Source of the DNA: Selaginella moellendorffii
Lineage: Eukaryota; Plantae; Lycopodiophyta
Length of the DNA stretch: 64,000 nt
Direction of reading: 5' to 3'
NCBI RefSeq assembly: GCF_000143415.4
Contig: NW_003314266.1
Location: 3,542,398 to 3,606,397, forward strand
Under the pieces are notes generated by a model. That model saw only the letters and a list, made by a program, of their open reading frames with translations. It was not told where the DNA came from and searched no databases. Positions 21,820 to 59,288 of this stretch are shown here, one piece after another. Position numbers and translations under genes: made by a program. The stretch's first letter is position 1, and every line of letters starts with the position of its first letter.

Positions 21820-23658
21820 ATGGCTCCTCCTGGACGCGCTGGTGCTGATCTAGATGGTAGGGATTACTGGGGCGCCATCGTCGCCGGGTTCTTGGAGCTC
21901 TTCATCGCCTGTCTCGTGCTCCTCACGGCCGGTGTCTCGCTCCTCGCCTCCAAGCTCATCAAGATCTTCGACCTGCCGTATCCATGTACGTATCTAGGGC
22001 TCCAGCACGAGCGATCGGTGCTGTGCGAGCAGCACAGGAGGCTGGCGCTGCTCAATCTCCAGCTGCATGACTCGTGTGGCGAGTGCTTGCGAGAGCTGAC
22101 GGCGGCGCGAATCGAGCAGAACGCGCGAGTTCTCCCGCTCTTCCAGGAGCCGCGCGTGAGGGAACTTCACGATGGAAGGGGCGACGATCATCATGATAAT
22201 GAAGAGGACGAGCTGGGTGATGACGGATTTGGGACCGAAGCGATCGCGCACAAGGTGACGAGCGTGGCCGTGGACGACAAGAAAAATCCGGAGGTGCCGT
22301 CGCCTAGAGTTGGAGCTACAGGAGATCGTTGTGTGAAGCGAAAGTTTGCGAAGATATTCGTGGAGGAGCTTCCGCATGATCAGGTATCGTCCGGCGTGAA
22401 ATCTTCCGAGGAGGAGAAAGATAGGGGCGATGCTACCTCGGATCTCTCCGTCGAGAGCGTCAAGGCAGCGTTCCAAGCGGAGAAAGACGCTCTGAACTCA
22501 CTTTATGTGGAGCTCGAGGAGGAAAGGAATGCGTCGGCCATAGCGGCCAACGAGGCCATGGCGATGATCACTCGGCTCCAGGAGGAAAAGGCAGCGGTTC
22601 AGATGGAAGCTCGTCAGTACCAGAGGATGGTTGAGGAGAAAGCGGAGTACGACCAGGAGGCTATCACTCTTCTCAAGGAGATACTCTTCAAGCGAGAACA
22701 GGAAAAGTTCGTGCTGGAGAAGGAGGTGGAGTCTTATCGAAAGCGGCTACTGCCCGCGAGAGATGGCGACGACGTCGACGACTGGCTTCCATCGAGGCTG
22801 CTCCTCGAAGGTGGTGGTGGTGGTGGTTTCGGTGCGGGCCAGAGAAAACCAGCCGAGCTTTCACGTTGGCAAGGGACCAATCTTCTCGAGGACTTCGATC
22901 GGGCGAGCTCGCATCACTCCGGGAGTGTATCCGGCGACGAAGCCACAGGGAATGGAGCGGAAGAGCTGGGCTTTCAACGCAACGCAAGCGCTGCAAGTCC
23001 GGGTGGTGATTATGGTGGCGATCCAACAGCGGGTGGTGATATCGATCTCGATCGAGGAAAACGTAGCGATCAAGTGGAAGAAGCTTTGAGCAACGGCAAC
23101 TCCGACCTTGATCTTCGAACCACCTCCATGGTCATGAGAGACAACTTCCGATTGGCCATGGAAAACGACATCCGAGAGCTAACGTCGAGATTGCAGGTGC
23201 TCGAGGACGACAGGCTGCTACTCACGCAGGTTGTGCAGTCGCTCACGGCCGACAAGCCGGATCATCTCCGAGAGCTCGCGCAACACTTTCGACTCAAGAA
23301 GGCCGCCGCCGAGCTCGCAGTTCCTCCAGTCTCTCAGGTACTTGGCTGCCATCACGAATGCATTTTAACATCCTAGGCCAGCTCCGAGCGCGCGAGCGAG
23401 AGAGGGTGATTGGATTTTTTCGTTTTCTACTGTTTTGTCTAGAGAGTGTGGGTGTGTGAGTTCTAGAGGGGGAGAGTAAAGCTATGTCTCGTTGCTTCGT
23501 TTTCTTTCTTTTTTCTCTGGGAGAGAGGTTTCTAGCTCTTCATTTTGTGCAATAAATAAGATCCTCTCGGGCGGCGTTTATATGAAACTTTCTGGTGGTT
23601 TCTTGTGTTCTTGCAGGTGGTCACGAAGAAACGAAGAATGGAAGGAAGCTTTTGGTAG
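21820..23658 (+). CDS. Myosin-binding protein (MyoB; GTD-binding/DUF593), 2 exons
   Basis: N-terminal TM segment plus DLPYPC, and DUF593 core LYVELEEERNASAIAANEAMAMITRLQEEKAAVQMEARQYQRMVEEKAEYDQEA. Intron 23338-23616 is inferred. Confidence 0.88.
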
Positions 23659-23938
23659 AAGATCTTGTTTGGAGCATCGAGTCTATCAAGGATTGGAGTA
23701 GAGAATTTGGATTTGGAGCGTTTCGCGAGGATTTGGAGCGCGAATGTAGATTTGTTTCATTCGAGCGTTTATTGTATTTGTAATGTTTGTATTGTATTTA
23801 AAGGAAGGTTATGTATGGTAGCTTGCCCTACCTTTAAAAGAATGCTTAGAATTTGGGTGTAACTTAAATATTTTGGTTGGTATGGTGGTTGGCTCCACTT
23901 TTCTAGGGCTAGAGAAGCGCTAGGGTTGCGCGTGAGCA

Positions 23939-26900
23939 ATGCAGCCGGATCGATCGGAATCGCCGGTCCTCCGGAGCGATCCCAGAGTAAGGTGAGCTCT
24001 CTCTTTCGGTGCGATCGGTCGCCGGATGATTTATTTCCAGTGACGAGGACGCGAGCGGCAGCATGGAAGTGACGATCCCAGCTCTTGACAGCTCCGATGT
24101 GCGGCGCAAGAGCTCTTCCACGCGCCCGTGCACGCTTGTCATCACTCACACGGGGCAATGCGTGAATCTGGTCGCGGATTCTGCGAGTGGTCCTCCAGTA
24201 GAGACGGAAGAGGAAATGTCTGTGACAAAGAACGCGTTCTTTGGGAAGCTGAGAGAGACGTTTGAGGATCTAAATCTTCGTGGACTTTTGTGGCTCAATA
24301 GCCAGGGACAAGGCAAGAACATCGACGCAGAGAAGGTACTTTTTTGAATGACTTCTTTGTTTTTCCTCTTCGATTTTATATTCCTTTTTGTCTGCTTCGC
24401 TAGAGAATCCAGCAATCGATTTTTCTTCACGCTGGTTTGTCTAACTGTTCCTTTTCGTTCTTGAACAGGATGTATTGTCTAGATTTCACAACTCTTATCT
24501 TTACGGAGATGTGCCTCTAAGTATCAAGCTTAGGACCGCAATCAGGAGTGGGACTTGGAGTCACGTCACGATTTGGGTAACTTCGAAGAATGAATTCTCT
24601 GTGATTTTGGTTTTTTTGCTTGAAAGCTAGTAGTTCATGCAGCTGCTCTTTGCAGGTAGAGTTTTTCGCCGCTGTGATTTCCGTGACTGCTTACGTACGG
24701 CAAACGTAAGTGCGGCGAAAGTTTTGGAATGTGTTTAACTATTTGTGTCTGCTCCTCAGGTATACGGAGGAGACACTAGGATGGTCCCAGTTCTTCAGGC
24801 GGGTCTTCTCTTTGTATTTTGCTGCCGACTATGTTCTGAGGATCTTTAGGTAGTTCGTTCGTTCCTTGAAGCAGCATCTTATGCTTGTCGTCTTTCTTTG
24901 CAGTGCTCCTGTTCGTCTCTATTACATTTTCTCTACTGCCGGAATTATCGATTTGATAAGCTCGCTGCCTATATTTTACATCTGGAGGTATGTAAAATTT
25001 TGAGGCCGCAATGTTGTTTAACCTTTTTTAATGGTGGCAACAGCGTCGCAGATAATTACAGCGCAGTTCCGCAAATGCTTCGGGTAATACGTGCACGAAG
25101 GTGCAAGGTTTGCTTTGAAGACAACTCCTGTCAAGGATAATATCGATTTTAATGCACCGTCATCTGGCAGAATACTACCTTACCTGCTTACTTTGGGACT
25201 AGTTGGTGGTACAATCGCTCAGCAGATATTTCTTCTTATAATGTACACTCTAGGAACTGGTACGCAAACTCTCGTTTGTTCTTTATCTTGATTCGTCTTC
25301 GTGCTTCAGTTTTCATAGCTGCTGGGATATTTCAGTGGGTTGAGTACAAGAATACCCCAGCAAATGTAAAAAGAGAAGCTAACTGTGACGAAGCAGGCTG
25401 CTTTACTTTCTATCAAGCTTTTTATTTTCTGATTGTTACGGTGAGTATGCTCTATATTTTTCCAAGTTCCGTTTTCTATTTTGTGCTGTTATAGATAACG
25501 ACGGTTGGATACGGGGATTTCAGTCCGAAGTCTAACTGGGGACGCTTTGTGGCAATCACCGTGATCTTGGCAGCAGTCCTGATACTGCCCTTGCAAATAA
25601 ATAATATTCTCCAGCTTGCGTCCCGCAGGTGAGCACCTATGTTTTCCTTATCACTGCTTTAAGATGTCTTTATGTTTTCCTGGTGCAAGACCGTATGGCG
25701 GAAAACTTGCGTTGCAAAAAGTTGTTGGGTCGCGGTTTATAATATTGAGTGGCAATGTTTCATTTAATACTGTAGAACATTTTCTCTCTGGCTTTTACCA
25801 TCCGTGCCATGACAAAGGTCCTTCTGCTCTTCAAGGTTGCTTACGGCATCCATCCTCTTTCGTGATTGCAGATATGACGGCGTTTCCTATACGTGTTGTT
25901 ATTATGGCACCTTTTAAGCCATCGTATGTTGCTTTTGCCTGACTGCTTGTTGGAAATTGCAATGTTTTCTATTGCAGGTTCGAGTTAAAAACGCTGCTTA
26001 CGGTGTACAAAGACAACGTTGAGTTCATTGAAGGTGTTCCCACGAAAGAAACTGATCTGGTTCGCGCTGGGGCAAAGCTTGCATCGGCTTTCTTTTTGTT
26101 GGCAGATCATTACGCCAAAGTAAATTGTAGTTGAACAAAATTCTCACTAACATGGATATTTATTTGCAGGATTTTGATGCGGAAGACGCAGCTCAAATGA
26201 CGCGCTCGTTATCTGTTCACCGTCACTGTGGTCCTATGGCTCGAGTGATTGTTGAACTATTAAAACCAGAGAACTGTAAAAGTGCGCTCTGGGACGAGTT
26301 TGAATCGGGTATTGAGGTGCTTTGTCCCGAAGCAATACGTTTTAAGTTGCTTGCAAGAAGGTATATGTCAAGTTTTCTGTCTCAACTGTCACTTTACCAT
26401 GTAAATGCAGCTGCCATATCCAAGGGTTTTCGACGTTCATCATCAACCTGTTTCGGTCAGGCTTATTTATCAGAAGTCCCAAAGAGGAGCATTGGATGGT
26501 GCAGTACTATCGAGGCCTTCAGCATGAAGTCTTCCCGGTCATATTACCACCGTGTCTTCATCGTCAGGAGCTAATGTTTGAAGAGGTTAGCATCGTTTGC
26601 CTCGTTTCTGAAGGTTTTCTGATCGTAATATGCTCAGGTGGTGGAAGTGATGTACCTCAAGTATAGAGTGATTCTTTTTGGGCTGGATGTGCAAATTGGA
26701 GACGGGTCCCGAACAGTGGTGCTGTATCCACGGGGGCGCATCTTGGATCCCTGTGACGTGGGGCTTGTGATTGCCAGCGATCTTGCAGCAGCGGAGCAAG
26801 TTTCTAAGTTTGGGTTACCCGTTCACCAAGCTTGTCCGTATCTTGACTTCTCTCAAGACTTGAAGATCGCCATGGACGACATGGTGTTGCAGCAAGTTAA

Positions 26901-28172
26901 AAACAGGTGGAAGGAGTTTCGCCGTAACGAAGAGAAATGGAAGAGCACGAATAACACGTTTGGTAGCTTGAGGGAAGGTCTCAAGAAGAATTTGGCCGCA
27001 TGGTCTTCGAGGAAAACAACGGTTACTAGTCTCGAAGATGCTATCGAGGCAGCAACAAGGTGGCCACCTCTCAAGCTGGATAAGCCCGATCCTCCGGTGC
27101 TAGCAAGGAGGGCTCAAATCATCCAGGCGCACTTGCAGAGCAACACGATGAATGTCGTGAGGCTACCTTCTCCACACATTCTTGTTTGCATCGAAGGAAT
27201 GTGGCCCGTCAACCTCTTCTACTTTGTTTCCAACTTGAGGATAAACAACGTCCTCAACTTGCCGGTAGTTATCCTTCATCCGAACGAGCCGACCGCCGCA
27301 CAATGGGGATGCGTTGGCCTTTTCTCAGACGTTTATTTCGTCCAAGGAACGGCTCTCTACGAGCTCGATCTTATTCGCGCTGGTGTCCTTCAAGCAGGTA
27401 CTGAGAATCTAGACCTTTCGTTGTATATGCATATGTTTTTTTGTCAGGCTTTTCTTTTTTTTCATACGCTTTGACGTTGCAGAGCGAGTGGTCATTCTGA
27501 CAGAGACGCTCCAGGAGGAATCTATTCAGTCCGATGACTCAGCCTCCATGTCTCAGTCCATCAACATCGCCGACTTAAACAACGTCCGAATTGCAGCGAA
27601 CGTGGAGCGTTTAATTAGCCCTGCAAGAGGTCGTGTTATTGTCGAGCTGCAGCAAGAAAACCAGATCCAGTTTCTGCGGCCCAAGTTCAACATAGATGCC
27701 CGTCTGTTTCACACTGGCATGTACCACCGAGACCACACAGGAAGGTTCCAGTTTGCTCCTCCTTACATCGAAGGGAAAGGCTTTAGTCCTGGAGCATTAA
27801 CATTTCTTATGTAAGTTCGAGTTCCATTTATGTTTTCTGAGCTGCTGACAGTTAATATTTTCCAGATACGCAACGTTTTTTAATTCCACTGTGATATCTA
27901 TAGTGGAGCAACTGTCATCTGGATGTCCCATGGACCAATTGGACGAAGGGAGTGCTGAAATCCGACACTTCGAACAAATTGCTGTTCCTAGACACTACCA
28001 GGGACAAACTTTCTCGGACCTGTTCCTCGGTTTGCTAGAGCACGAAAGGATACTCGCATTGGGACTGTACAGGCCTCTGGGGACGCAGGGATCCGTCGTT
28101 TGCTACGTTTCCACCAATCCTGAGCCGTCCTTGAGTTTGGTTGAAGGCGATCTGGTCTATGTCCTCAAGTGA
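23939..28172 (+). CDS. SLO/BK-family potassium channel with S1-S6, TVGYGD pore and two RCK domains (multi-exon)
   Basis: S4-like MLRVIRARRIL, pore FYQAFYFLIVT|ITTVGYGDFSPKSNWGR, RCK motifs (FIILSG, DLVRAGAKLA, HILVC, FVQGTALYELDLIRAGV, VIVEL) and the C-terminal LGLYR...YVSTNPEP...GDLVYVL. Confidence 0.9.
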
Positions 28173-28305
28173 TCGTGATCTCAGCCGTCCGTAAGCTCGA
28201 AAGAAATTCCTTCATGGAACGTCAACTGGGGGCACCAACGGTTGAGATGGTTTTGTCATTCGTGAAGAATGCGTCCTTTGGAGAGCGGCTCTCACATCTC
28301 GTGAA

Positions 28306-29407
28306 ATGGTGAGAGAAGTTGAGATGTCTGGAACCATCGAGCATGTCGACTTTCAGGTACGAAACTCGCTTTCATTTTACCAAACGCATTTCTTTCTCTG
28401 TCTTTTGTATTGCAGAAGGCATTTGGCATCTTGTATGGAGACGAAAAGTTCCAAAAGAGATATCACAAAGAAATCAGTAAAGATCCCGGTGCGGTAGTGT
28501 CCACTTGGACGAGGGAGGGGCGGCGGGAAGTCAAGTTTGCAGCTCCAGTGAGTGCACCAAAAGTAGTACAGATGCTTCTAGGTAATCGATCAGCACAATG
28601 TGTTTTTCGTGACACTGACGAGCTTCGCCGTGCTTCCAGGCGCAGACAAGCTGCAAGTGACAGAAATCCAGCAGTATACAAAGCTGGAAGATTCAGTCAT
28701 CATAAAGTCTGAGCCGATTTTCGACGCTCCTGGTGGAAGCAGCTTTCGGACGTTTGGTAAAGTGATACTGGCGCCTGGTGATACAGATCGAAGCTGCCGC
28801 GTCACCATGTTGATATCATTGGAATGCAAAGCTGGAATGTGGGGAGTACAGGGTATGGTGGTTTTAGTTTACGTGGTGGTGTCTTTGTTAACTGGTGATT
28901 TTCTCAGGAACCGTCGAGAGTTACATGGAGACCCATGCAAGGAAATCTTTTACGGGATGGATGCGCATAGCTCGAATCTTTTGTGAGGAGGAGCTCGGGT
29001 TGACACAGCGGCAGGAGTTTGGAGACGAGGACGAGTACTACGATTTTGAGGACGTGGGATCGGTCTCGGGGTCAGAGACAGGGAGTAGTTCTGGTAGCGT
29101 AGCGGATAGAGACAGGGACGTTGGCTCCAGCAGCGAGGCTCCGTTAGGACTGGACATGTGGTTCGTCCAGTCTGTTTTGAAGGAGCTCAACGGGTTGCAG
29201 ATATCCGGGGACGCATCGCGGACGCATTTAGAGAAGTTGAATGTCAAGCTCCAAAAGATTGAGGACGAGCTTTTCATCGTCAAGTCCCACTTAGAGCGGC
29301 AGAATCGGCGATGGTTACAGGCGACGTGGGGGGTGGTGGCTTTGAGCATTGCAATCGGGTTGATAATCGGTTTCCGACGGCTGTGTGTGCGCACAAACAG
29401 GAGGTAG
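28306..29407 (+). CDS. VASt (StAR-like lipid transfer) domain protein with coiled coil and C-terminal TM anchor (4 exons)
   Basis: Spliced ORF with VVSTWT...RREVKF, VTEIQQY, DAPGGSSF, CRVTM...WGVQGTVES and a hydrophobic C-terminal helix followed by basic residues. Confidence 0.7.
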
Positions 29408-29508
29408 CACTGCTCAGACTCCCATGAATTTGGTTGGCATTTATTCGGAGATGGGAACAGGAAAGGAATCCTATGAGAAGGACTCGAGGAAGACACAGGA
29501 GATTATCA

Positions 29509-31993: not shown

Positions 31994-34900
31994 TCAGGGT
32001 TCTCTTGTAGATGGGCCGAGATCTGGAGGAACGTCAGGAGGAGGCATCGGCGGATCTGTAAACGGTATTAACTGCTCCTGATCCCTTTGTATGAAGTGTT
32101 TTAACCGCTGCACATGCACAATCTCCGAAGGATCAGCCTGCTGAACGTCATGCCGAACCTCATAAACTTGCGGTCCAGCTTGCCGCAACACCCGATACGG
32201 TCCTTTCCACTGCGCAAGGAGCCCCTTAGATAAACCACGTACCGTAAGATGGGGAAAACGGACTAACACCAAATCATCCACTTTGTACTCTGCAGGTGGA
32301 CGATGATAGGAGTTATAGCGCCGTTGTTGTCCCACTTGTACGCGGCCTAAGTGTTCGGCAGACTCTGCTCGGACAAATGGAAGAATGCTTGTCAAATATT
32401 GATCCCATGACCTAGCATCAGGAGCTCGTGGCAATCGCAAAGGTAAACCCAACTCTGTTGGTAATATTGGATCATGACCATATAGAAGTTTATATGGTGA
32501 AGCACCAACAGAACTCTGCACCCCTGTGACATAGGCATACCGAAGAGACGGCAAATAACCATCCCCATCTGAATGCTGAAAGTTCACATACTTCGCAATC
32601 ATCCCTTTAAATGTCCGAACGAGCCGTTCCACCAGACCGTCTGATTGTGGATGATAAGCACTCGTAAAAGTGTGGCGTATCCCCAACCGAGATGTCAAAA
32701 CATGAAATACCTCAGCCATAAATGCAGGACCATTATCCGAAAGAATCCGCTATGGACAAGAATGTTGGAACACCACTTAATTGAGGAGGAAGTATCCAAC
32801 AGCAGTTGCAGAGGCACTAGCAAGAGCACCAACTTCCACCCAACGAGTCAAGTAGTCAAAAGCAATAATAACATACTCCTTGCCAGCAGTAGATCGTGGA
32901 AAAGGTCCCATAAGATCAAACACCACTAACTCAAACGGACGGGAAACTGCAATTGACTCCAACCGTCCTTCTGCAGCACAAGGGAGAGTATTACGAGCTT
33001 GGCACCAAACGCAAGTACGCACATACCGGATAATATTATGTTGCATCTCCGGCCAATAGAAAGACCTGCGCAGCTTCTCAGTGACACGACGGTGTCCCAT
33101 ATGCCCACCTAGAACAGGAGAATCATGGTAGGCATGGAGAAACCGCGGAATAAACACCGAAGGCACCACCAACCGTAAATGATCATCAGGATCTGTCCCC
33201 ACAAAATAAAGAAGGCCATCTTCAAGGCGATATTGAGAATGTAAATGCCGGAAAGGCAAGTCATCAGCAAGTGATGCAGGATTCTCAAGCCCATCTCGAA
33301 GCCTTCGAATCCACGGCTCAATCTTTTGAGCCTCGCGAACCTCATCAAGAGAAGGTAGATCTTGCTCTACGCCCTGTGGACACTGAACGTCAAGGACAAC
33401 AACCGCCGACGGCACAGAATCCTCATCTAGAAAATCCACAGACGCTGGAACAACAGGTTCGTTAGAAACATGAGAAGTGAGTGGAGAAGGAAGAGGAGCT
33501 CGAAAAAGGGCATCAGCATCAGCCATAGAACTCCCTGGGCGATGAACAACATCAAAATCATATATCTGAAGCTTCAAAGCCCATCAAGCCGTACGACCAA
33601 CTAGGTTCTTCCGCTTCAATAATGAAGTAACAGTAGCATGGTCACCTTCAAGTAACGTCCGAGAACCATGTAGATATGCATGAAGTTTCTCGAAACCCCA
33701 GACTGCTGCTAAACACTCCTTCTCCGTCGTGGAGTAGTTCATCTCCGTTGGTTGTAATGTACGGCTGATGTATGCAATGGGATGGCGCTGACCAGGCACA
33801 CTCGAGCTCTCTTGCATCAACACACCTTCAAGACCAATGTCAGAAGCATCCACGCGCAAAATAAAAGGTCGAGTGTAGTCAGGATATGCCAAAACCGAAG
33901 GAGTCATCAATAACTCTTTAAGATCTACGAACGCCCGCTCGCAATCCGGAGACCAGATGAAAGATGACGTTGATGACTTCAGCAACGCTCGCAATGGTGT
34001 AGTGCGATCGGAAAGATGATCCACAAAATGACCGAGATACTGCACCTTACCCAAAAAGCACTGCACATCATTCACACACTTCGGAGTAGAGAACTTTAGA
34101 ACAGCCACAAGTTTGTCAAGATCAACTTGAAAACCCTCACGAGAAATACGGTACCCAAGATAAGTTGTGTCCTTGGACCCAAACACGCACTTTGACCGCT
34201 TCAGCTTTAAACCAACATCACGTAACTGATCCAACACTTTACAAACATCACGAACGTGCTCCTCCCACGTCCCCTCCGAGTGGATCAAGACATCATCAAT
34301 GAAGTCAACAGTCACCTCCGGCATATCGCAAAGAACCTCGTCCATCATTCGCTAGAAAGTTGCTGGATCATTGTTCAAACCAAACGGCATCACCAAAAAC
34401 TCGTACAAACCAAATGGTGTACGAAAAGCAGTCTTAGGAATATCTTTTTGGGCCATCGGTACTTGCCAATACCCAAAAACAAGATCTAGCTTGGTGAACC
34501 AACGACTTCGCCCCAGACGATCCAAGAGATCAGCAGTGTGAGGAAGAGGATACACATCTAGGATCGTCACTTCATTTAATGGACGATAGTCGATGCAAAA
34601 ACGAATACTCCCATCAGGCTTCGTCACAAGATGAGGTTCACATGCCCAAGGACTCCGCGACTTCCAAATAACACCCTTCTCCAGCATTTCCTTGACGTTT
34701 GCTCGTAAAATCTTGATCTCCTTAGGTGACCGACGACAAACAGGAACCTTGATTGGACGAGCATCCCCGGTTGGAATCAGATGACGTGTGGCAATCTTGG
34801 CCCCAGACGATAGGTCAAATTCAAAGAGATCAGAATACTCCTTCATGAGCCAGTCAACTGCTGCAACACAAAGAGCGTCGGAGGGATTGGAAAAGGGAAA

Positions 34901-35482
34901 AGCAGAACAAGATAGAAACACAGAAGGAAAAAGTGGGGGAACAAAAGTAGTGGAAGCAGAGGTAAAAGTAGAGGGATGAAGGGGTATGGAAGTGAGAGGA
35001 ATGGATGAAACATAAGGAAGTATGAGACAAGGAGGAGAAACCTTAAAGTCACACTTGGCATGATTGCGCTGCAACTAATCCATACCAAGAATGAGGTCAA
35101 AAGCTTGACTCGGCACCACCCGCAACGGCTACAACTCAAGCTCGAGATCGCCCACACGCACAACCAAATCCACCTCATCCCATGCACATGCATGTGTACG
35201 ACAGTTGCCATAAAGAATGAAAACTGGTTCTGCCGCACGACGCAAGTGTAGACGACAACGTGTGGCAACAGGTCGAGCAATAGAAGATAAACTCGAACCT
35301 GTATCAACCAACACGGAGAGAATAATAAAAGACCTCTTGTTATAAAAACGAGCTTGGAAAGTAAACACTGGATGAACTGGTGCCGAGTGAACCCCTTGAT
35401 GATACTCCCGAAAGAAAGATAGAGGGGTCACTGATTTATTCGCGCAAGGTCCCTCCATTACTCGCGTGATTCCTCGTTTCCC
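31994..35482 (-). pseudogene. pol: Gypsy pol (protease, RT, RNase H, integrase) in one frame with six in-frame stops
   Basis: LVDTGSS, RFCIDYRPLN, VMPFGL, FIDD, DASDIG, HH-CC, YHPQSDGLVER, WKGPYRV. All ORF pieces share one frame. Confidence 0.93.
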
Positions 35483-36387
35483 GGATGCATCTTGGTGTCC
35501 AGACCTTCCACTACAGTAGCACCCAGGGGACGTTGCTGACGCCAAGGTATCCACCCAGGAAATGGAGGTCGCCAATCCAGAAAACGACGGCAACGCCGAT
35601 AAGTATGACCAACTTCATCACACGCCCAGCAGCGAACATCACGGCCACGACCACGTCCTCGCACTTGTCCTTGGACTTGAGCAGCAGCAGCATCAACCTC
35701 CATGGGAACAGGACCATCACCCATAGGAAGTGGAGCGGAAGGATGTGCAGCGAGAAGTGGAAGAGGCGACGTCTCATAATGTTGTGCCAAGCGAAAAGCA
35801 TCGTCAAGGGTGGCAGGAGAAAGTGCATGCATAAGTCCAACAAAATCTTGACGAAGTGCTGGCCACAACATTCCTAGCTTGATCCGCTCCGACATATTTG
35901 GCTCCGCACGAAGCAAAAGACTTCGGAAACAAACGCCAAATTGCATCACCGACTCAGATGGCCCTTGGCAAAGACGATGCAATTGTTGGAAAGCATCATC
36001 ACAATCATCGGCATGTCCGAAGGCGTGTTTGAAGACATCCGGGAGAACACTCCAATCCCCACGAGTGGCTGCGCTCAAACCATTGTACCACTGCAACGCC
36101 GTCCCTTGAAGACACGTGGGAAACTCACGCAACCGTCGAGCATCATCCCAAGAATGATATGTGGCAATCACCGTAAAGTGATCGAACCAATGGTACACAT
36201 CATCCCCAGGATTCCCGCGAAAGAACTCCGGCCGAACGCGAGGATTGGCACCAACAGCAAGAGTTGTACCATGTGCCGTGAATGCCGCCATCAACTGAGT
36301 TTGGTTGTTCAATTGCAAGCGTATAGCATCAAGCAATTGAACCAACTGCTGCTCTAGAGTCAAAGGAGGAGATTGCGGATCAGCCAT
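35458..36387 (-). CDS. gag: Retrotransposon Gag with CCHC zinc knuckle
   Basis: 309-aa ORF with LQGTALQWY, PVPMEVD and CWACDEVGHTYRRC. Confidence 0.92.
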   Translation of the reverse strand: MADPQSPPLTLEQQLVQLLDAIRLQLNNQTQLMAAFTAHGTTLAVGANPRVRPEFFRGNPGDDVYHWFDHFTVIATYHSWDDARRLREFPTCLQGTALQWYNGLSAATRGDWSVLPDVFKHAFGHADDCDDAFQQLHRLCQGPSESVMQFGVCFRSLLLRAEPNMSERIKLGMLWPALRQDFVGLMHALSPATLDDAFRLAQHYETSPLPLLAAHPSAPLPMGDGPVPMEVDAAAAQVQGQVRGRGRGRDVRCWACDEVGHTYRRCRRFLDWRPPFPGWIPWRQQRPLGATVVEGLDTKMHPGNEESRE

Positions 36388-54972: not shown

Positions 54973-57900
54973 TGTTACATGACACACCTCGCCACGTGTC
55001 CATTAGGGTTTTCCTGTTCTGTCCGCTAGCGCGGTGCGCTTTGATCCCGATTTGTCTCATGGTATCGGAGCTGGGATAGCGCTATGGAAGGAAAGCCATC
55101 CATCCGCGAGTTTGATGGAGAAGGGTTTGAGGGATTCAAGATCCATCTTGAATCCTATCTCTTGTTTCATGGTTTGTTGGGGATTGTAGATGGGACAGAG
55201 TCATCACCGGCTCCAGGCTCTAGCGCTGCTGAGGTGCGTGATTGGAACCTTCGGGATTCCAAGGCTAGAGGGAGTATTGCAATGTGCTTGTCCTCAAATG
55301 TTCTCTTTGCTGCCCCATCGATTCCAAAGTCCACTGCGGCAGAGCTTTGGAAGTGGCTGAGTGACACTTATGGCACCAAGAGTGAAATGGATGTCTTCAA
55401 CATCCATTCACAAATGGATTCCTTGAGGCTAGAGGAAAATGGCAGTATCCAGACTCACACTGCCAAGCTCCAGGGTTTCTTCACACAACTTGCAGCTGCT
55501 GGGGCGAAGCACTGTCTCACGGATGAACAGCAGAGGCTGCGGCTCTACAGGTCCTTGCCAGCGAGCTGGAAGAATGCAGTTGAGAGCCTGCTTCTCCAAC
55601 CAGGGATGACTTGGGCAGATGCCGTGAGGAGTCTTCACAACATTGAGGCCATGCGAAGCGAGAGAGCTGAAATGCCACAGGCTATGTATGCTTCGCAGGC
55701 TTCTGGTGATGCCCAGGTGGCAAAACCGCATGCAGCTGCAAATGCCCAGAAAGGGCAAAATTCCATGGCATCTGGGCGTGCCAAGCCCAGACTTGCTAAG
55801 AATCAATGTGCTCGCTGCTTGGCGATGGGCCATTGGGCTCGAGATTGCCCTGCTCCCAAGCCTGTCAAGCGACTAGCTACGTTGGCGAAAGCTAATTTGC
55901 TTGAGCGTGATGGAATTGCTACTGCAAATGAGGCTGTTGAGGAGCTCTACAACGCAGAGGCAATTGCCGCACCAAGCCGGTGGCTCTTAGACTCTGGTTG
56001 TACTAATCTTATGAGCAATAAGAAGAGTCTTTTTGAGTGTTATCAGCCGAGCATTGGAAAACGTGGTGTTCATTTAGGTGACAATACCACCATCCCGGTG
56101 GACGGCATCGGGCAATTCCGGCTCTCACTCGATCATGGGAGGACCATGGCCTTTGATGGTGCCATGCATGTTTCCACCTTGCGACGAAACTTAATGTCCG
56201 TCGCCAAGCTATGTGATCAAAATGCGGTGGTAGTCTTTGATGCAAAGGGAGTCTCTTTAGTTGACTCTAGCGACTTTCATATGCTTGGTACACAGTTGCT
56301 TCGTGGGTCACGCATTGGGGACTTGTATGAGATTACTGCTGTCGACCCAGTTCAGGCCTTTCAGACTGTGGAGGCAGATTCTCATGCGGAGCTTTGGCAT
56401 AAAAGACTCGGTCATGTTCATTACCAATCTCTTCAACGGATGAAATCCCAAGATATCGTTACTGGATTGGATTTCCGACGTATCCCATCTACATTTTGTG
56501 AAGCTTGTGTTTTAGGCAAGCATCACCGCCGGAACTTCTCACCGAGTAAGCATCGAGCACTTGGACTTCTGGACTTAGTCCATTCTGATCTTTGCGGCCC
56601 CATGGACGTGCCAAGTCACGATGGCGCAAGATATTTCATCACATTCATTGATGACTATAGCCGTCGAACATGCATCCACTTCTTGATGCGTAAGAGTGAT
56701 GCAGTTGCTGCCTTTCAAACATACAAGGCATACGTTGAAAACCTCCTTGGTCGAAAGATAAAAGCTCTTCGAGTTGATGGTGGTGGCGAATACCTCAACA
56801 ATGAGCTTCGGGGCATCTGTCGTGATGTAGGCATACGACTGCAAGCTACCGCCCGCTACACCCCCCAGCAAAATGGTGTTGCAAAAAGGAAGAATCGTAC
56901 TCTTGTCAATGCTGCTCGTGCTTTGTTAGCTGATGCACATCTTGACAAGATGTTTTGGCAAGAGGCCATAGCCACAGCAATGCATGTACAAAATCGCCTT
57001 GCCACGGCTGCTTTGGATGGAAAAACCCCTGAGGCATTTTGGACAGGTTCTACTCCTGATGTGTCCCACTTTCGGGTCTTCGGTTGTGCAGCATACGCAC
57101 ATACCCCTGATCAACTTCGGAAAAAGCTAGATCCCAAGAGTAAAAAATTCATCTTCGTGGGATATGCACAGGACGACACTATCGGGAGAAAAGCTTACAA
57201 GTTGTGGGATCTTGCCTCTCACAAGGCTATTGTAAGCACAGATGTCATGTTCAATGAAGACGACTTTCCCATGCGTACAGAGGCTCTTCAAGATCCTTCT
57301 TTTATTGCTGAGACTCGACTTGTTCCTTTGATCCCACTTATGGGAGATGGTCCACTCTTGCCTCCGCCTCAAGATCCTATTTATGAGTTGCCACCAGAGA
57401 TTCCATTGGGGAATCCTCCACTTCTGGACATGCTTGAACCAGCTGATGCTCCTCTAGTTGAGGATAGGCCTCCGACACCTCCGACACCTCCACCACCTTG
57501 TCGACGTCGTGGCATGCCTGATCCGATGCCAGTTCTTGATCACCCCCGGGAACGTCGGCCCTCGTTAAAAGTCCGGGAAAATGCTGAAGCAGATGCTGCA
57601 GAGCTTGATGACTTTTGTGGCCTTATTGACATCGGCATCCCCATGACCTATGATGAGGCTATCTCAGGACCTGAGGCTTCATCTTGGATGGAAGCTATTG
57701 CGGAAGAAGTTTCTTCCATTCGGGCTAACGGAACTTATGTTCCAGTTGATTCAGCGCCACCGGGACGACGTGTTTTGGATCCAAAATGGATTTTTTCCAA
57801 AAAGTATGGGAAAGATGGCCAGGTTGTACGTTATAAGGCACGGTTGGTTGTTCGTGGTTTTCGCCAAGTCCATGGCCTTGACTACGATGAAACATTCTCA

Positions 57901-59288
57901 CCGGTTGTAAAAATGGCCAGCCTCCGTACTCTTTTTGCCCTTGCGGCTGCTCGCAAATGGCAAGTCCACCATATGGATGTCAAAACTGCATTTCTGAATG
58001 GGGATTTGCAAGAGGACATCTATATGCATATACCTCCTGGTTTTGAGGACGATGTTGCCCCTGGTGGCCCTATATGGCAATTGTGGAAAGCTTTGTATGG
58101 CTTAAAACAAAGCTCTCGTATTTGGTATCAAAAATTTGATGCCACCCTACGTGCTCAAGGCTTTCGTCGCTGTCATGCTGATCACAATGTGTATGTCAAT
58201 GGTCATGCTGAGCGCATGGTTATTGTGGCCCTCTACGTTGATGATTTGCTCATCATGGGTGATGACAACGATGCCATTGCTGCTCTGAAAGATGCTCTCA
58301 GCCAGCAATTCCAGATGAAGGACCTTGGCAGAGTCTCCTACTTTCTTGGCTTTGAAGTCACACGTGATCCTGATTCTGGTGGCTACATGCTTAGCCAACG
58401 ACGTAAAGTCGAAGTCTTGCTGGATTGGTTTGGTATGCGTGATTGCCACCCCGTCAAGACCCCGATGGTCGTTGGTGCTATCGACCTCACAGTTGAGCAG
58501 TCTGGTGAGCCTCTACCCACTGGGACTCCCTATCGGCATCTCATTGGTTGCCTCACATATTTGGCCCTGATGACTCGCCCCGACATCACATATGCGACTA
58601 TTGCCTTGAGTCAGTACAACACATCACCAACCACCATACATTGGCAAGCTGCCAAGCGTATCGTGAGATACCTCCGGGGCACTATGGACTATGGCATTGC
58701 TTATTCAGGGGGTGATGCATCATTAGCATGCTACACAGATGCTAGTTTTGCCAACAACAAAGGTCATCGCTCGACTTCTGGCATTTGCCTTTCCTTCTCA
58801 GGAGGTGCCATCACGTGGGCCTCCAAGCGACAATCTGTGGTGGCCCTTTCTAGTGCAGAAGCGGAGTACATCGCACTCACTACTGGTAGCAGGGATGTGG
58901 TCTGGGCTCGAGGGTTACTTGCTGAGCTGGGATGTGCACAAGCTGGCCCCACTACTTCTTGGTGTGACAACCGAAGCAGCATTGCCATGTCCAAGAACCC
59001 CATCCACCATGCCCGCTCGAAGCACATTGAAGTCCAATTTCACTATGTGCGTGAGTTGGTTGACGGTGGCACCCTCGCCGTCCAACATCTCGGGACACAG
59101 GATATGCCAGCCAATCTTCTCACTAAGCCGTTGGGGCCACACTAGTTTCAGCTCCTACGTGACAGATTTGGTTTGGTGAGTGGCTTCGGTTTGGGGGGGA
59201 GTGTTACACGACACACCTCGCCACGTGTCCATTAGGGTTTTCCTGTTCTGTCCGCTAGCGCGGTGCGCTTTGATCCCGATTTGTCTCA
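54973..59288 (+). mobile_element. Young Ty1/copia LTR retrotransposon with 87-bp LTRs
   Basis: LTRs at 54973-55059 and 59202-59288 (1 mismatch), TSD CCCCT, PBS TGGTATCGGAGC (tRNA-iMet type), PPT GGGGGGGAG. Confidence 0.98.
55084..59145 (+). CDS. Copia Gag-Pol polyprotein (gag-PR-INT-RT-RH), probably defective
   Basis: CARCLAMGHWARDC, WLLDSGCT, LWHKRLGH, HSDLCGP, YKARLV, MDVKTAFL, LYVDDLL, SSAEAEY. Confidence 0.95.
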   Translation: MEGKPSIREFDGEGFEGFKIHLESYLLFHGLLGIVDGTESSPAPGSSAAEVRDWNLRDSKARGSIAMCLSSNVLFAAPSIPKSTAAELWKWLSDTYGTKSEMDVFNIHSQMDSLRLEENGSIQTHTAKLQGFFTQLAAAGAKHCLTDEQQRLRLYRSLPASWKNAVESLLLQPGMTWADAVRSLHNIEAMRSERAEMPQAMYASQASGDAQVAKPHAAANAQKGQNSMASGRAKPRLAKNQCARCLAMGHWARDCPAPKPVKRLATLAKANLLERDGIATANEAVEELYNAEAIAAPSRWLLDSGCTNLMSNKKSLFECYQPSIGKRGVHLGDNTTIPVDGIGQFRLSLDHGRTMAFDGAMHVSTLRRNLMSVAKLCDQNAVVVFDAKGVSLVDSSDFHMLGTQLLRGSRIGDLYEITAVDPVQAFQTVEADSHAELWHKRLGHVHYQSLQRMKSQDIVTGLDFRRIPSTFCEACVLGKHHRRNFSPSKHRALGLLDLVHSDLCGPMDVPSHDGARYFITFIDDYSRRTCIHFLMRKSDAVAAFQTYKAYVENLLGRKIKALRVDGGGEYLNNELRGICRDVGIRLQATARYTPQQNGVAKRKNRTLVNAARALLADAHLDKMFWQEAIATAMHVQNRLATAALDGKTPEAFWTGSTPDVSHFRVFGCAAYAHTPDQLRKKLDPKSKKFIFVGYAQDDTIGRKAYKLWDLASHKAIVSTDVMFNEDDFPMRTEALQDPSFIAETRLVPLIPLMGDGPLLPPPQDPIYELPPEIPLGNPPLLDMLEPADAPLVEDRPPTPPTPPPPCRRRGMPDPMPVLDHPRERRPSLKVRENAEADAAELDDFCGLIDIGIPMTYDEAISGPEASSWMEAIAEEVSSIRANGTYVPVDSAPPGRRVLDPKWIFSKKYGKDGQVVRYKARLVVRGFRQVHGLDYDETFSPVVKMASLRTLFALAAARKWQVHHMDVKTAFLNGDLQEDIYMHIPPGFEDDVAPGGPIWQLWKALYGLKQSSRIWYQKFDATLRAQGFRRCHADHNVYVNGHAERMVIVALYVDDLLIMGDDNDAIAALKDALSQQFQMKDLGRVSYFLGFEVTRDPDSGGYMLSQRRKVEVLLDWFGMRDCHPVKTPMVVGAIDLTVEQSGEPLPTGTPYRHLIGCLTYLALMTRPDITYATIALSQYNTSPTTIHWQAAKRIVRYLRGTMDYGIAYSGGDASLACYTDASFANNKGHRSTSGICLSFSGGAITWASKRQSVVALSSAEAEYIALTTGSRDVVWARGLLAELGCAQAGPTTSWCDNRSSIAMSKNPIHHARSKHIEVQFHYVRELVDGGTLAVQHLGTQDMPANLLTKPLGPH

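Follow-up and report, generated by a model that had tools for sequence, protein, structure and literature searches.

A transcribed BK/Slo-family potassium channel gene in the lycophyte Selaginella moellendorffii

Exon map and domain architecture

The window, a 64,000-nucleotide stretch of Selaginella moellendorffii DNA, carries on its forward (+) strand, as do all features described below, a gene for a BK/Slo-type K+ channel. Its coding span occupies 23939..28172 in 18 exons (1057 codons plus stop), from the ATG at 23939 to the stop codon at 28170–28172, and coincides exactly with the coordinates given by the initial annotation. All 17 introns are of the GT..AG type and measure 49–133 nt. Twelve GT..AG joints within the gene were observed in intron-free contigs (four runs, four studies), which back its transcription and splicing; the other five introns were deduced from loose contig ends, block lengths and identity to the RefSeq product. 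The introns described initially are therefore real. The spliced translation of the window agrees at every one of its 1057 residues with the RefSeq S. moellendorffii protein 'calcium-activated potassium channel subunit alpha-1 isoform X2' (P0154), so that the transcript can be spliced into an intact open reading frame, a point that the initial annotation had left to be checked.

The first nine exons encode the N-terminus, the voltage sensor and the approach to the pore. Exon 1 (23939..23991), with the start codon, gave 100% identity in a tblastn search with P0154 and is followed by the 49-nt intron 1 (23992–24040). Exon 2 (24041..24335), which encodes part of a hydrophilic N-terminus, matches P0154 and is followed by a joint (24333>24467) present in all four runs. 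The segment preceding S1 and the start of S1 lie in exon 3 (24469..24576; a joint, with loose ends at 24579 and 24655), S1 in exon 4 (24656..24705; contig joints and the splice model) and S2 in exon 5 (24760..24849; joints 24705>24760 and 24847>24902). Exon 6 (24904..24987), supported by contigs and by alignment with Slo1, encodes S3 with a conserved Asp corresponding to Slo1 D186. S4, with its R-x-x-R-x-R-R arginine pattern, is encoded by exon 7 (25044..25100), whose productive donor is the GT at 25101; exon 8 (25171..25259), placed by the splice model and by comparison with the paralogue P0002, covers the S4–S5 linker and S5. The end of S5, the turret and the pore helix follow in exon 9 (25310..25440; joints 25258>25309 and 25439>25494).

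Exon 10 (25495..25628; Pfam Ion_trans_2, 1.7e-10) encodes S6 and the TVGYGD selectivity filter (residues 322–327, 25501–25518) in the pore loop between S5 and S6. Exon 11 (25690..25817), which rests on identity to P0154, its joint not being among those listed, contains the S6–RCK1 linker ending in PYGG and the beginning of RCK1. RCK1 continues through exon 12 (25872..25923; splice model and contigs), exon 13 (25978..26119; Slo-like_RCK, 1.3e-5; joint 25923>25978) and exon 14 (26170..26360), in which BK_channel_a also begins. The joint before exon 14 (26117>26168), displayed as AA..GC, corresponds to a canonical intron at 26120–26169 combined with an A/G difference at 26119. Exon 15 (26411..26585) belongs to the BK_channel_a region, the domain match itself covering residues 520–609 (26314–26685). 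The end of RCK1, a long RCK1–RCK2 linker and the N-lobe of RCK2 are encoded by exon 16 (26638..27397; Slo-like_RCK, 1.7e-13), further RCK2 sequence by exon 17 (27483..27810; position of the Slo1 Ca2+ bowl at 27665–27742), and the RCK2 C-lobe with Slowpoke_C and the stop codon by exon 18 (27866..28172; Slowpoke_C, 1.3e-7; joint 27810>27866).

Pfam was searched exon by exon and with the whole of P0154. The whole protein matched Slo-like_RCK twice (3.1e-36), BK_channel_a (1.3e-18), Ion_trans (1.9e-16), Ion_trans_2 (3.6e-15) and Slowpoke_C (4.6e-6), including both profiles, BK_channel_a and RCK, with which the initial annotation had proposed to search. No match to cNMP-binding, ankyrin or KHA domains was found on the whole protein at E ≤ 0.001, in agreement with the tandem RCK tail, rather than a cNBD/ankyrin tail, proposed at first. 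Hydropathy analysis resolved S1–S6 and a pore helix, and residues 1–144 contained no hydrophobic segment (best 19-residue Kyte–Doolittle mean 0.86), which bears out the six-transmembrane topology claimed for this TVGYGD channel. The resulting order is S1–S4 voltage sensor, TVGYGD pore, S6, RCK1, BK_channel_a, long linker, RCK2 and Slowpoke_C.

The AlphaFold model (mean pLDDT 79.3, pTM 0.75) has a low-confidence N-terminus without a membrane-length helix before S1, and a tail that matches Slo1 gating-ring structures. Its best Foldseek match was full-length Slo1 (E 5.5e-44 over ~1000 columns), followed by Slo2.2. Sequence comparison with solved structures likewise returned Drosophila Slo (7pxe, 2.5e-48), human Slo1 (~2e-46) and Aplysia Slo1 (2.6e-43), and more weakly Slo2 (KCNT1, ~2e-29), the Slo3 gating ring (2.4e-24) and Kv4 (5e-11). 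Exons 16 and 17 searched singly against PDB sequences gave no useful match, exon-sized pieces being too short to be informative at ~20% identity.

Origin, plant relatives and prior knowledge

S. moellendorffii has further family members, namely SmKC1 (P0002, XP_002972667.1), P0153 and the BK-like 2 gene (P0034), all with the same domain set as P0154; Slowpoke_C scores above the Pfam cut-off in P0154 and P0034 and below it in P0002. Identity to P0154 is 55–58% for P0002 and P0153, while P0034 is a member of a second land-plant clade. Trees were computed without animal Slo1, Slo2 or Slo3 and without any sequence named MpBK2a, the Marchantia polymorpha channel discussed below. In the smaller tree the gene is sister to SmKC1 (support 100/99). 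In the larger one it groups with P0002 and P0153 in a trio that is sister to Diphasiastrum and then to ferns plus gymnosperms, and nests with lycophytes inside land-plant clade A; the single Marchantia protein included, OAE22765.1, which may or may not be MpBK2a, belongs to the other land-plant clade. The branching order of the gene tree mirrors that of the streptophytes: Chlorokybus and Mesostigma first, then Chara and Zygnematophyceae, then land plants.

This Selaginella-specific trio sits inside a streptophyte BK clade that follows plant phylogeny, and the gene is therefore native. Contamination by, or recent horizontal transfer of, an animal or protist sequence would fit the animal provenance of the nearest characterised relatives, and acquisition from fungi or protozoa could not be excluded in a 2012 paper (PMC3410407). 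Such an origin is nevertheless vanishingly improbable, given the concordance of gene tree and streptophyte phylogeny, the 17 introns, small like those of the similarly compact SmKC1 gene (4.1 kb, 1063 aa), the plant-specific adjoining genes (Zein-binding, DUF3527, PPR) and an identity to animal Slo1 of only about 20%. Domains, introns, trees and identity to P0154 together uphold the original description of a native nuclear Slo/BK gene of a lycophyte, and we are highly confident that the locus as a whole is best explained as a native, intact and transcribed nuclear gene for one of four BK/Slo-family K+ channel alpha subunits of S. moellendorffii.

[quoted passage not shown] The initial annotation gave the distribution as algae, mosses and lycophytes, with absence from angiosperms; this holds according to the same two sources but is understated, members being present in liverworts, ferns and gymnosperms as well. 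No angiosperm was among the 30 matches of a word search with P0002. The same search returned P0154, whose identity to the product of the window disposed of a hornwort or a second Selaginella species as the source; these had been considered because matches in a library of 50%-identity representatives reached no more than about 60% and because loose-end 30-mers from a paralogue failed to match the SmKC1 loci. S. moellendorffii BK genes have been counted as four (PMC11617655). Publications of 2012, 2021 and 2024 had thus already covered the family, the lack of it in angiosperms and the four S. moellendorffii genes, and the gene is already annotated in RefSeq, so that the BK/Slo finding is correct but ordinary, and the locus represents no new kind of gene. 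Its remaining value lies in a verified exon map and in a residue-level view of lost Slo1 ligand sites, within a group of channels that forms a little-studied remnant of the streptophyte ion-channel set, lost by angiosperms.

Splice variants and expression

Spliced contigs of the gene are present in ~16 runs from 8 studies, and several depart from the productive transcript. An alternative exon 7 donor, the GT at 25108 (+7 nt), appears in contigs of runs X1, X5 and X11, as deduced from block lengths of 64 and 90 plus record arithmetic; it breaks the frame and leads to a stop after 288 aa. A splice model with this contig-supported 64-nt exon 7 was accordingly rejected, and donor 25101, which agrees with P0154 and with the S4–S5 sequence of the paralogue P0002, restores the intact frame. 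Contigs of run X2 break at the exon 7 junction. Intron 1 is left unspliced in contigs of runs X1 and X5, in which case the reading frame opened at 23939 closes 18 aa on, with no further in-frame ATG before 24063. The 54-nt intron at 25818–25871 is free of stops and in frame, and a lower-depth contig extends into it.

These variants would fit a paralogue that is decaying or suppressed by unproductive splicing and yields little or no functional channel: the +7 donor truncates the product, X2 contigs break at the same place, intron 1 is retained in X1 and X5, and the P0154 branch, at 0.58 versus 0.23 and 0.33, is the longest in the Selaginella trio. We regard this as very unlikely, however. The genomic reading frame runs intact through 1057 codons; conservation extends to the filter, the arginines of S4, the PYGG linker and the RCK cores, and to all invariant columns of a 42-sequence alignment; and the productive donor is the one found in the RefSeq model. 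The contigs, moreover, give no isoform ratios, because the assembler keeps one path through a bubble. At slightly better though still long odds, splice-site choice may control this most divergent of the three Selaginella-specific paralogues: the +7 mRNA might prevail in the sampled tissues, as an NMD target or as the message for a 288-residue protein consisting of the voltage sensor only, and the full-length channel might be made only in particular cells, such as those of male gametophytes.

The initial annotation saw a possible role in flagellated sperm or in excitability. A main role in flagellated sperm, in motility or control of the membrane potential, could be proposed by analogy with Slo3 and Slo1 in animal sperm, but we consider it unlikely. 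Contigs in so many runs and studies, taken irrespective of tissue, do not suggest restriction to a rare gametophytic cell type, and the four Selaginella paralogues may have split functions. Homologues are also retained in Taxus and Cryptomeria, conifers that are not known to have motile or flagellated sperm, which weakens the sperm role as a general rule.

Predicted gating and comparison with known channels

In alignment with human Slo1, the protein keeps the equivalents of R210, R213, D186, E399 and E535, and shows the changes R207 to Q, E374 to R, M513 to S, E321 to N and E324 to Q. In RCK2, a non-acidic, insert-bearing segment that HMMER leaves unaligned to Slo1 follows the conserved QFL where Slo1 has the acidic run of the Ca2+ bowl. 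The RCK1 Ca2+ site of Slo1 consists of D367 and E535, with M513 nearby; D362 and D367 are placed in the alphaA–betaB loop, and the placement of a 4-residue gap decides whether the equivalent of D367 is C or a nearby D. Of the two RCK1 residues of the Slo1 Mg2+ site that were compared, E374 is replaced and E399 is kept. Neither the Kyte–Doolittle profile of residues 1–144 nor the AlphaFold N-terminus contains the S0 helix of the Slo1 subfamily.

By this architecture, four subunits would make a K+-selective pore, and their eight RCK domains a gating ring in the cytosol. Arginines in S4 that match Slo1 R210 and R213 would allow activation by depolarisation, and the ensuing K+ efflux would repolarise the membrane. 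We infer gating and conductance from these residues and from a liverwort relative, MpBK2a, by analogy with which the gating ring would more likely sense protons or some other ligand. A Ca2+ response like that of Slo1 is probably absent and the unitary conductance probably smaller, given the loss of the Ca2+ bowl, the substitution at E374 and the lack of the E321/E324 acidic ring at the inner mouth. A residual divalent-cation site may persist in RCK1, as E535 is kept and D367 perhaps so.

With S0 absent and the Ca2+ bowl replaced by a non-acidic segment, the 'calcium-activated' of the RefSeq name is doubtful, and probably credits the product with more Ca2+ dependence than it has. A true Ca2+-activated BK channel, opened jointly by voltage and by Ca2+ on the gating ring, would accord with the overall Slo1-like architecture and best matches, with the kept E535 and possible D367 equivalents, and with the Ca2+-activated large-conductance K+ channel of the Chara vacuole, thought to be encoded by the alga's BK gene (PMC11617655). 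We nonetheless hold it to be unlikely. The bowl is lost, the RefSeq name was carried over automatically from animal KCNMA1, and MpBK2a is unaffected by 100 µM Ca2+, plant BKs sharing almost no Ca2+-binding residues (bioRxiv 10.1101/2021.06.01.446568).

MpBK2a is K+-selective and outward-rectifying (~80 pS); voltage and pH, both external and internal, control its gating, and it is insensitive to Ca2+, Mg2+ and Na+ (bioRxiv 10.1101/2021.06.01.446568). It belongs to the same streptophyte BK family as the Selaginella protein and likewise has no assignable S0, an extended RCK1–RCK2 linker and no Ca2+-bowl residues, but represents a different lineage. It is the sole functional reference among plant BKs: the only plant BK electrophysiology concerns this one Marchantia member and is available only as a preprint, and a literature search found no later functional paper on plant BK channels.

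Among animal channels, Slo1/KCNMA1 (7pxe, 6v22, 9czh, 5tj6) is the best match in both sequence and fold from S1 through RCK2, sharing, besides the conserved residues listed above, TVGYGD, the PYGG linker, BK_channel_a and Slowpoke_C. Slo1 has a large conductance of about 250–300 pS, and its S0 gives seven transmembrane segments and an extracellular N-terminus. The Selaginella protein differs from it, at ~20% identity, in having no S0 and a 144-residue hydrophilic N-terminus, a much longer RCK1–RCK2 linker, no Ca2+ bowl and the substitutions at E374, M513 and E321/E324. Animal Slo3 (KCNU1), which is pH-gated and acts in sperm, and Slo2 (KCNT1), which lacks S0, likewise combine a tandem-RCK gating ring with the lack of a functional Ca2+ bowl, but match P0154 more weakly than Slo1 does (4hpf, 2.4e-24, and 5u70, 1.9e-29, respectively), and of the solved Slo3 chains the gating ring alone was matched. 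The analysis gave no evidence of Na+ or Cl- sites in P0154. Plant Shaker channels (AKT1, KAT1, SKOR/GORK) are also six-transmembrane, voltage-gated K+ channels with a GYGD filter; their tails, however, are built with cNBD, ankyrin and KHA domains, whereas P0154 showed none of the three and has RCK1–RCK2 as its tail instead.

Gene model and transcript structure

Three-frame translation of 23800-28400 on the forward strand yielded a chain of short open stretches, one of which (25495-25629) carries the TVGYGD filter and, after it, a hydrophobic S6. The joints and loose ends of RNA contigs, combined with frame logic, gave a model in which the coding sequence, at 23939-28172, is divided into 18 exons by 17 introns; the introns measure 49-133 nt, most of them 50-63 nt. 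Its spliced translation is identical across 1057/1057 residues to P0154, the RefSeq S. moellendorffii 'calcium-activated potassium channel subunit alpha-1 isoform X2', which was retrieved by a word search with the paralogue P0002 as query and mapped onto the window's exons at ~100% identity, including the first exon at 23939. The span proposed in the initial annotation is therefore exactly the RefSeq coding sequence of an already annotated gene, and its transcript can indeed be spliced into an intact ORF. It is an intact, expressed and native gene, and its family has been described before.

In many runs, from one organism and eight studies, 0.5-0.58 of the words sampled from the gene stretch were present, the share expected from an intron-free copy. 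Alignment to 23400-29000 of contigs assembled from four runs of four studies (X1, X2, X5 and X11) identified at least 12 GT..AG joints inside the gene, most of them present in all four. The S4 exon (exon 7) measures 64 nt rather than 57 nt in the X1, X5 and X11 contigs, based on aligned blocks at 25042-25105 and 25169-25258 and on the 377 record letters separating the flanking blocks in an 889-nt X1 contig. The longer exon has its donor GT at 25108 instead of 25101, the two lying in tandem 7 nt apart; X2 contigs break at this junction, as a bubble would give. The upstream donor at 25101 fits both RefSeq and the S4-S5 sequence of the paralogues; use of 25108 shifts the channel ORF out of frame, with a stop after 288 residues. 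Contigs give no isoform ratios, and either donor form may prevail.

Contigs of X1 and X5 retain the first intron (23992-24040, 49 nt) and also have a 3-nt deletion at 24025. When this intron is unspliced, the ORF from the ATG at 23939 ends after 18 aa; translation of a protein 25 residues shorter could then begin at the in-frame ATG at 24063. Intron 11 (25818-25871) is 54 nt long, in frame and stop-free, and because a lower-depth contig extends into it in X1, X2 and X11, an isoform with 18 extra RCK1 residues is possible. A joint printed as AA..GC (26117-26198 region) resolves into a canonical intron at 26120-26169 together with an A/G difference at 26119 that is synonymous for Lys. At 26168 and 26198, long loose ends mark points where contigs switch to a paralogue with a common 31-mer; SmKC1 was ruled out as this paralogue, with only 24-26 of 30 nt matching its loci, L001 and L002.

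Contigs span both the channel gene and a downstream gene (28173-29410 region), whose ATG at 28306 lies just 134 nt past the channel stop. Three or more small introns (joints 28353>28413, 28579>28638 and 28851>28907) interrupt this gene, whose product carries a hydrophobic segment at its C-terminus; a Pfam scan of two of its exons returned no match. Upstream, 21820-23613 encodes a Zein-binding (myosin-binding type) protein, and the sequence of a loose end at 23614 recurs at 23314-23334, implying a ~279-nt intron that takes off the end of its long ORF. Elsewhere in the window lie an apparently intact polyprotein of a copia-type LTR retrotransposon (gag, integrase, RVT_2; 55084-59145) and a second run of ORFs on the minus strand (31994-36387).

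Ancestry and distribution

Searching a library of 50%-identity representatives with the largest exon returned 120 relatives. P0002 ranked best among those of full length and was identified by cluster look-up as S. moellendorffii SmKC1. Further look-ups placed relatives in land plants (Ceratopteris, Riccia, Marchantia, Diphasiastrum) as well as in Chara, Spirogloea, Mesotaenium, Chlorokybus, Mesostigma, Guillardia and a sponge. A carefully built tree made the gene sister to SmKC1 (support 100/99) and united the streptophyte sequences in one clade, separate from the cryptophyte and sponge sequences. A larger quick tree split the land-plant sequences into two clades, with zygnematophytes as sister to each; the clade of the gene also holds Physcomitrium, Sphagnum, Riccia, ferns and gymnosperms. 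Within this clade, the gene, P0002 and a further paralogue, P0153, make up a Selaginella-specific trio with Diphasiastrum as sister, and the gene has the longest branch of the three (0.58 vs 0.33 and 0.23). As the topology tracks plant phylogeny, the gene is vertically inherited. Together with plant-specific flanking genes (Pfam: Zein-binding, 7.9e-34; DUF3527, 3.1e-45; PPR proteins), the tree bears out a native nuclear gene, as initially suggested from the introns. We found four S. moellendorffii BK loci (P0002, P0153, P0154 and the BK-like 2 gene P0034), in agreement with the four BK genes counted previously (PMC11617655).

Gomez-Porras et al. 2012 (PMC3410407) described BK-like channels in both P. 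patens and S. moellendorffii, but none in Arabidopsis, rice or poplar. A later study, Sussmilch et al. 2021 (bioRxiv 10.1101/2021.06.01.446568), followed the family through green algae up to the gymnosperms, with none in the angiosperms examined, and remarked on an association with flagellated cells. Both studies agree with the absence from flowering plants stated in the initial annotation. In line with this, 0/30 of the matches listed for the P0002 word search, a non-exhaustive set, are from angiosperms. The same 30 include Taxus, Cryptomeria, a presumed Ginkgo record (Gb_05212), ferns, lycophytes, mosses and liverworts. A sperm role may still apply to the Selaginella gene, but finds no support as a general rule, since the family is kept in conifers, which are not known to have motile sperm. 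In addition, transcripts of this paralogue occur in many runs of unstated tissue.

Architecture and comparison with known channels

An exon-by-exon Pfam scan matched Ion_trans_2 at the filter/S6 stretch (1.7e-10), Slo-like_RCK at 25943-26131 (1.3e-5) and 26629-27471 (1.7e-13), and Slowpoke_C at 27849-28169 (1.3e-7), all on the forward strand, confirming the K+ pore with TVGYGD and the tandem RCK tail read initially. Whole-protein searches with P0154 recovered both anticipated families, Slo-like_RCK (twice, at 3.1e-36) and BK_channel_a (1.3e-18), along with Ion_trans (1.9e-16), Ion_trans_2 (3.6e-15) and Slowpoke_C (4.6e-6). No cNBD, ankyrin or KHA domain appeared in the Pfam scan of whole P0154, consistent with the proposal that the tail is not of the Shaker cNBD/ankyrin type.

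The best solved structures by sequence were Drosophila Slo (2.5e-48), human Slo1 (~2e-46) and Aplysia Slo1 (2.6e-43), with much weaker matches to Slo2 (~2e-29), to the gating ring of Slo3 (2.4e-24) and to Kv4 (5e-11). An AlphaFold model from a 42-sequence alignment (mean pLDDT 79.3, pTM 0.75) likewise had Slo1 as its best Foldseek match (E 5.5e-44 over ~1000 columns), Slo2.2 being next. Hydropathy of P0154 revealed S1-S6 and a pore helix, with no hydrophobic segment in the first 144 residues; the N-terminus is low-confidence in the AlphaFold model. The 6-TM topology originally described thus stands and, unlike that of Slo1, is without an S0 helix.

The roles of the Slo1 residues compared here are established, and the chain numbering of 9czh agrees with the literature numbers (e.g. 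Q397, E399, M513, E535). Relative to human Slo1, P0154 keeps the complete filter and the PYGG linker, as well as D186, E399, E535 and the arginines at R210 and R213. It carries Q in place of R207, R in place of E374, S in place of M513, N in place of E321 and Q in place of E324. The D367 equivalent is C or a nearby D, depending on the placement of a 4-residue gap. At the Ca2+ bowl, located by the conserved QFL, the acidic run of Slo1 gives way to a non-acidic segment and an insert (27665-27742).

The present analysis documents the architecture, conservation, expression and ancestry of the gene. Its product would be expected to form a tetramer with an eight-RCK gating ring and to mediate depolarisation-activated K+ efflux, probably without Slo1-type activation by Ca2+ or Mg2+ and with a conductance below that of animal BK. 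Our literature search found no functional papers on plant BK channels later than Sussmilch et al. 2021, in which the Marchantia polymorpha channel MpBK2a is K+-selective and outward-rectifying (~80 pS), shows no sensitivity to Ca2+, Mg2+ or Na+, and is gated by external and internal pH (bioRxiv 10.1101/2021.06.01.446568). By analogy with MpBK2a, the Selaginella channel may possibly be proton-sensitive as well.
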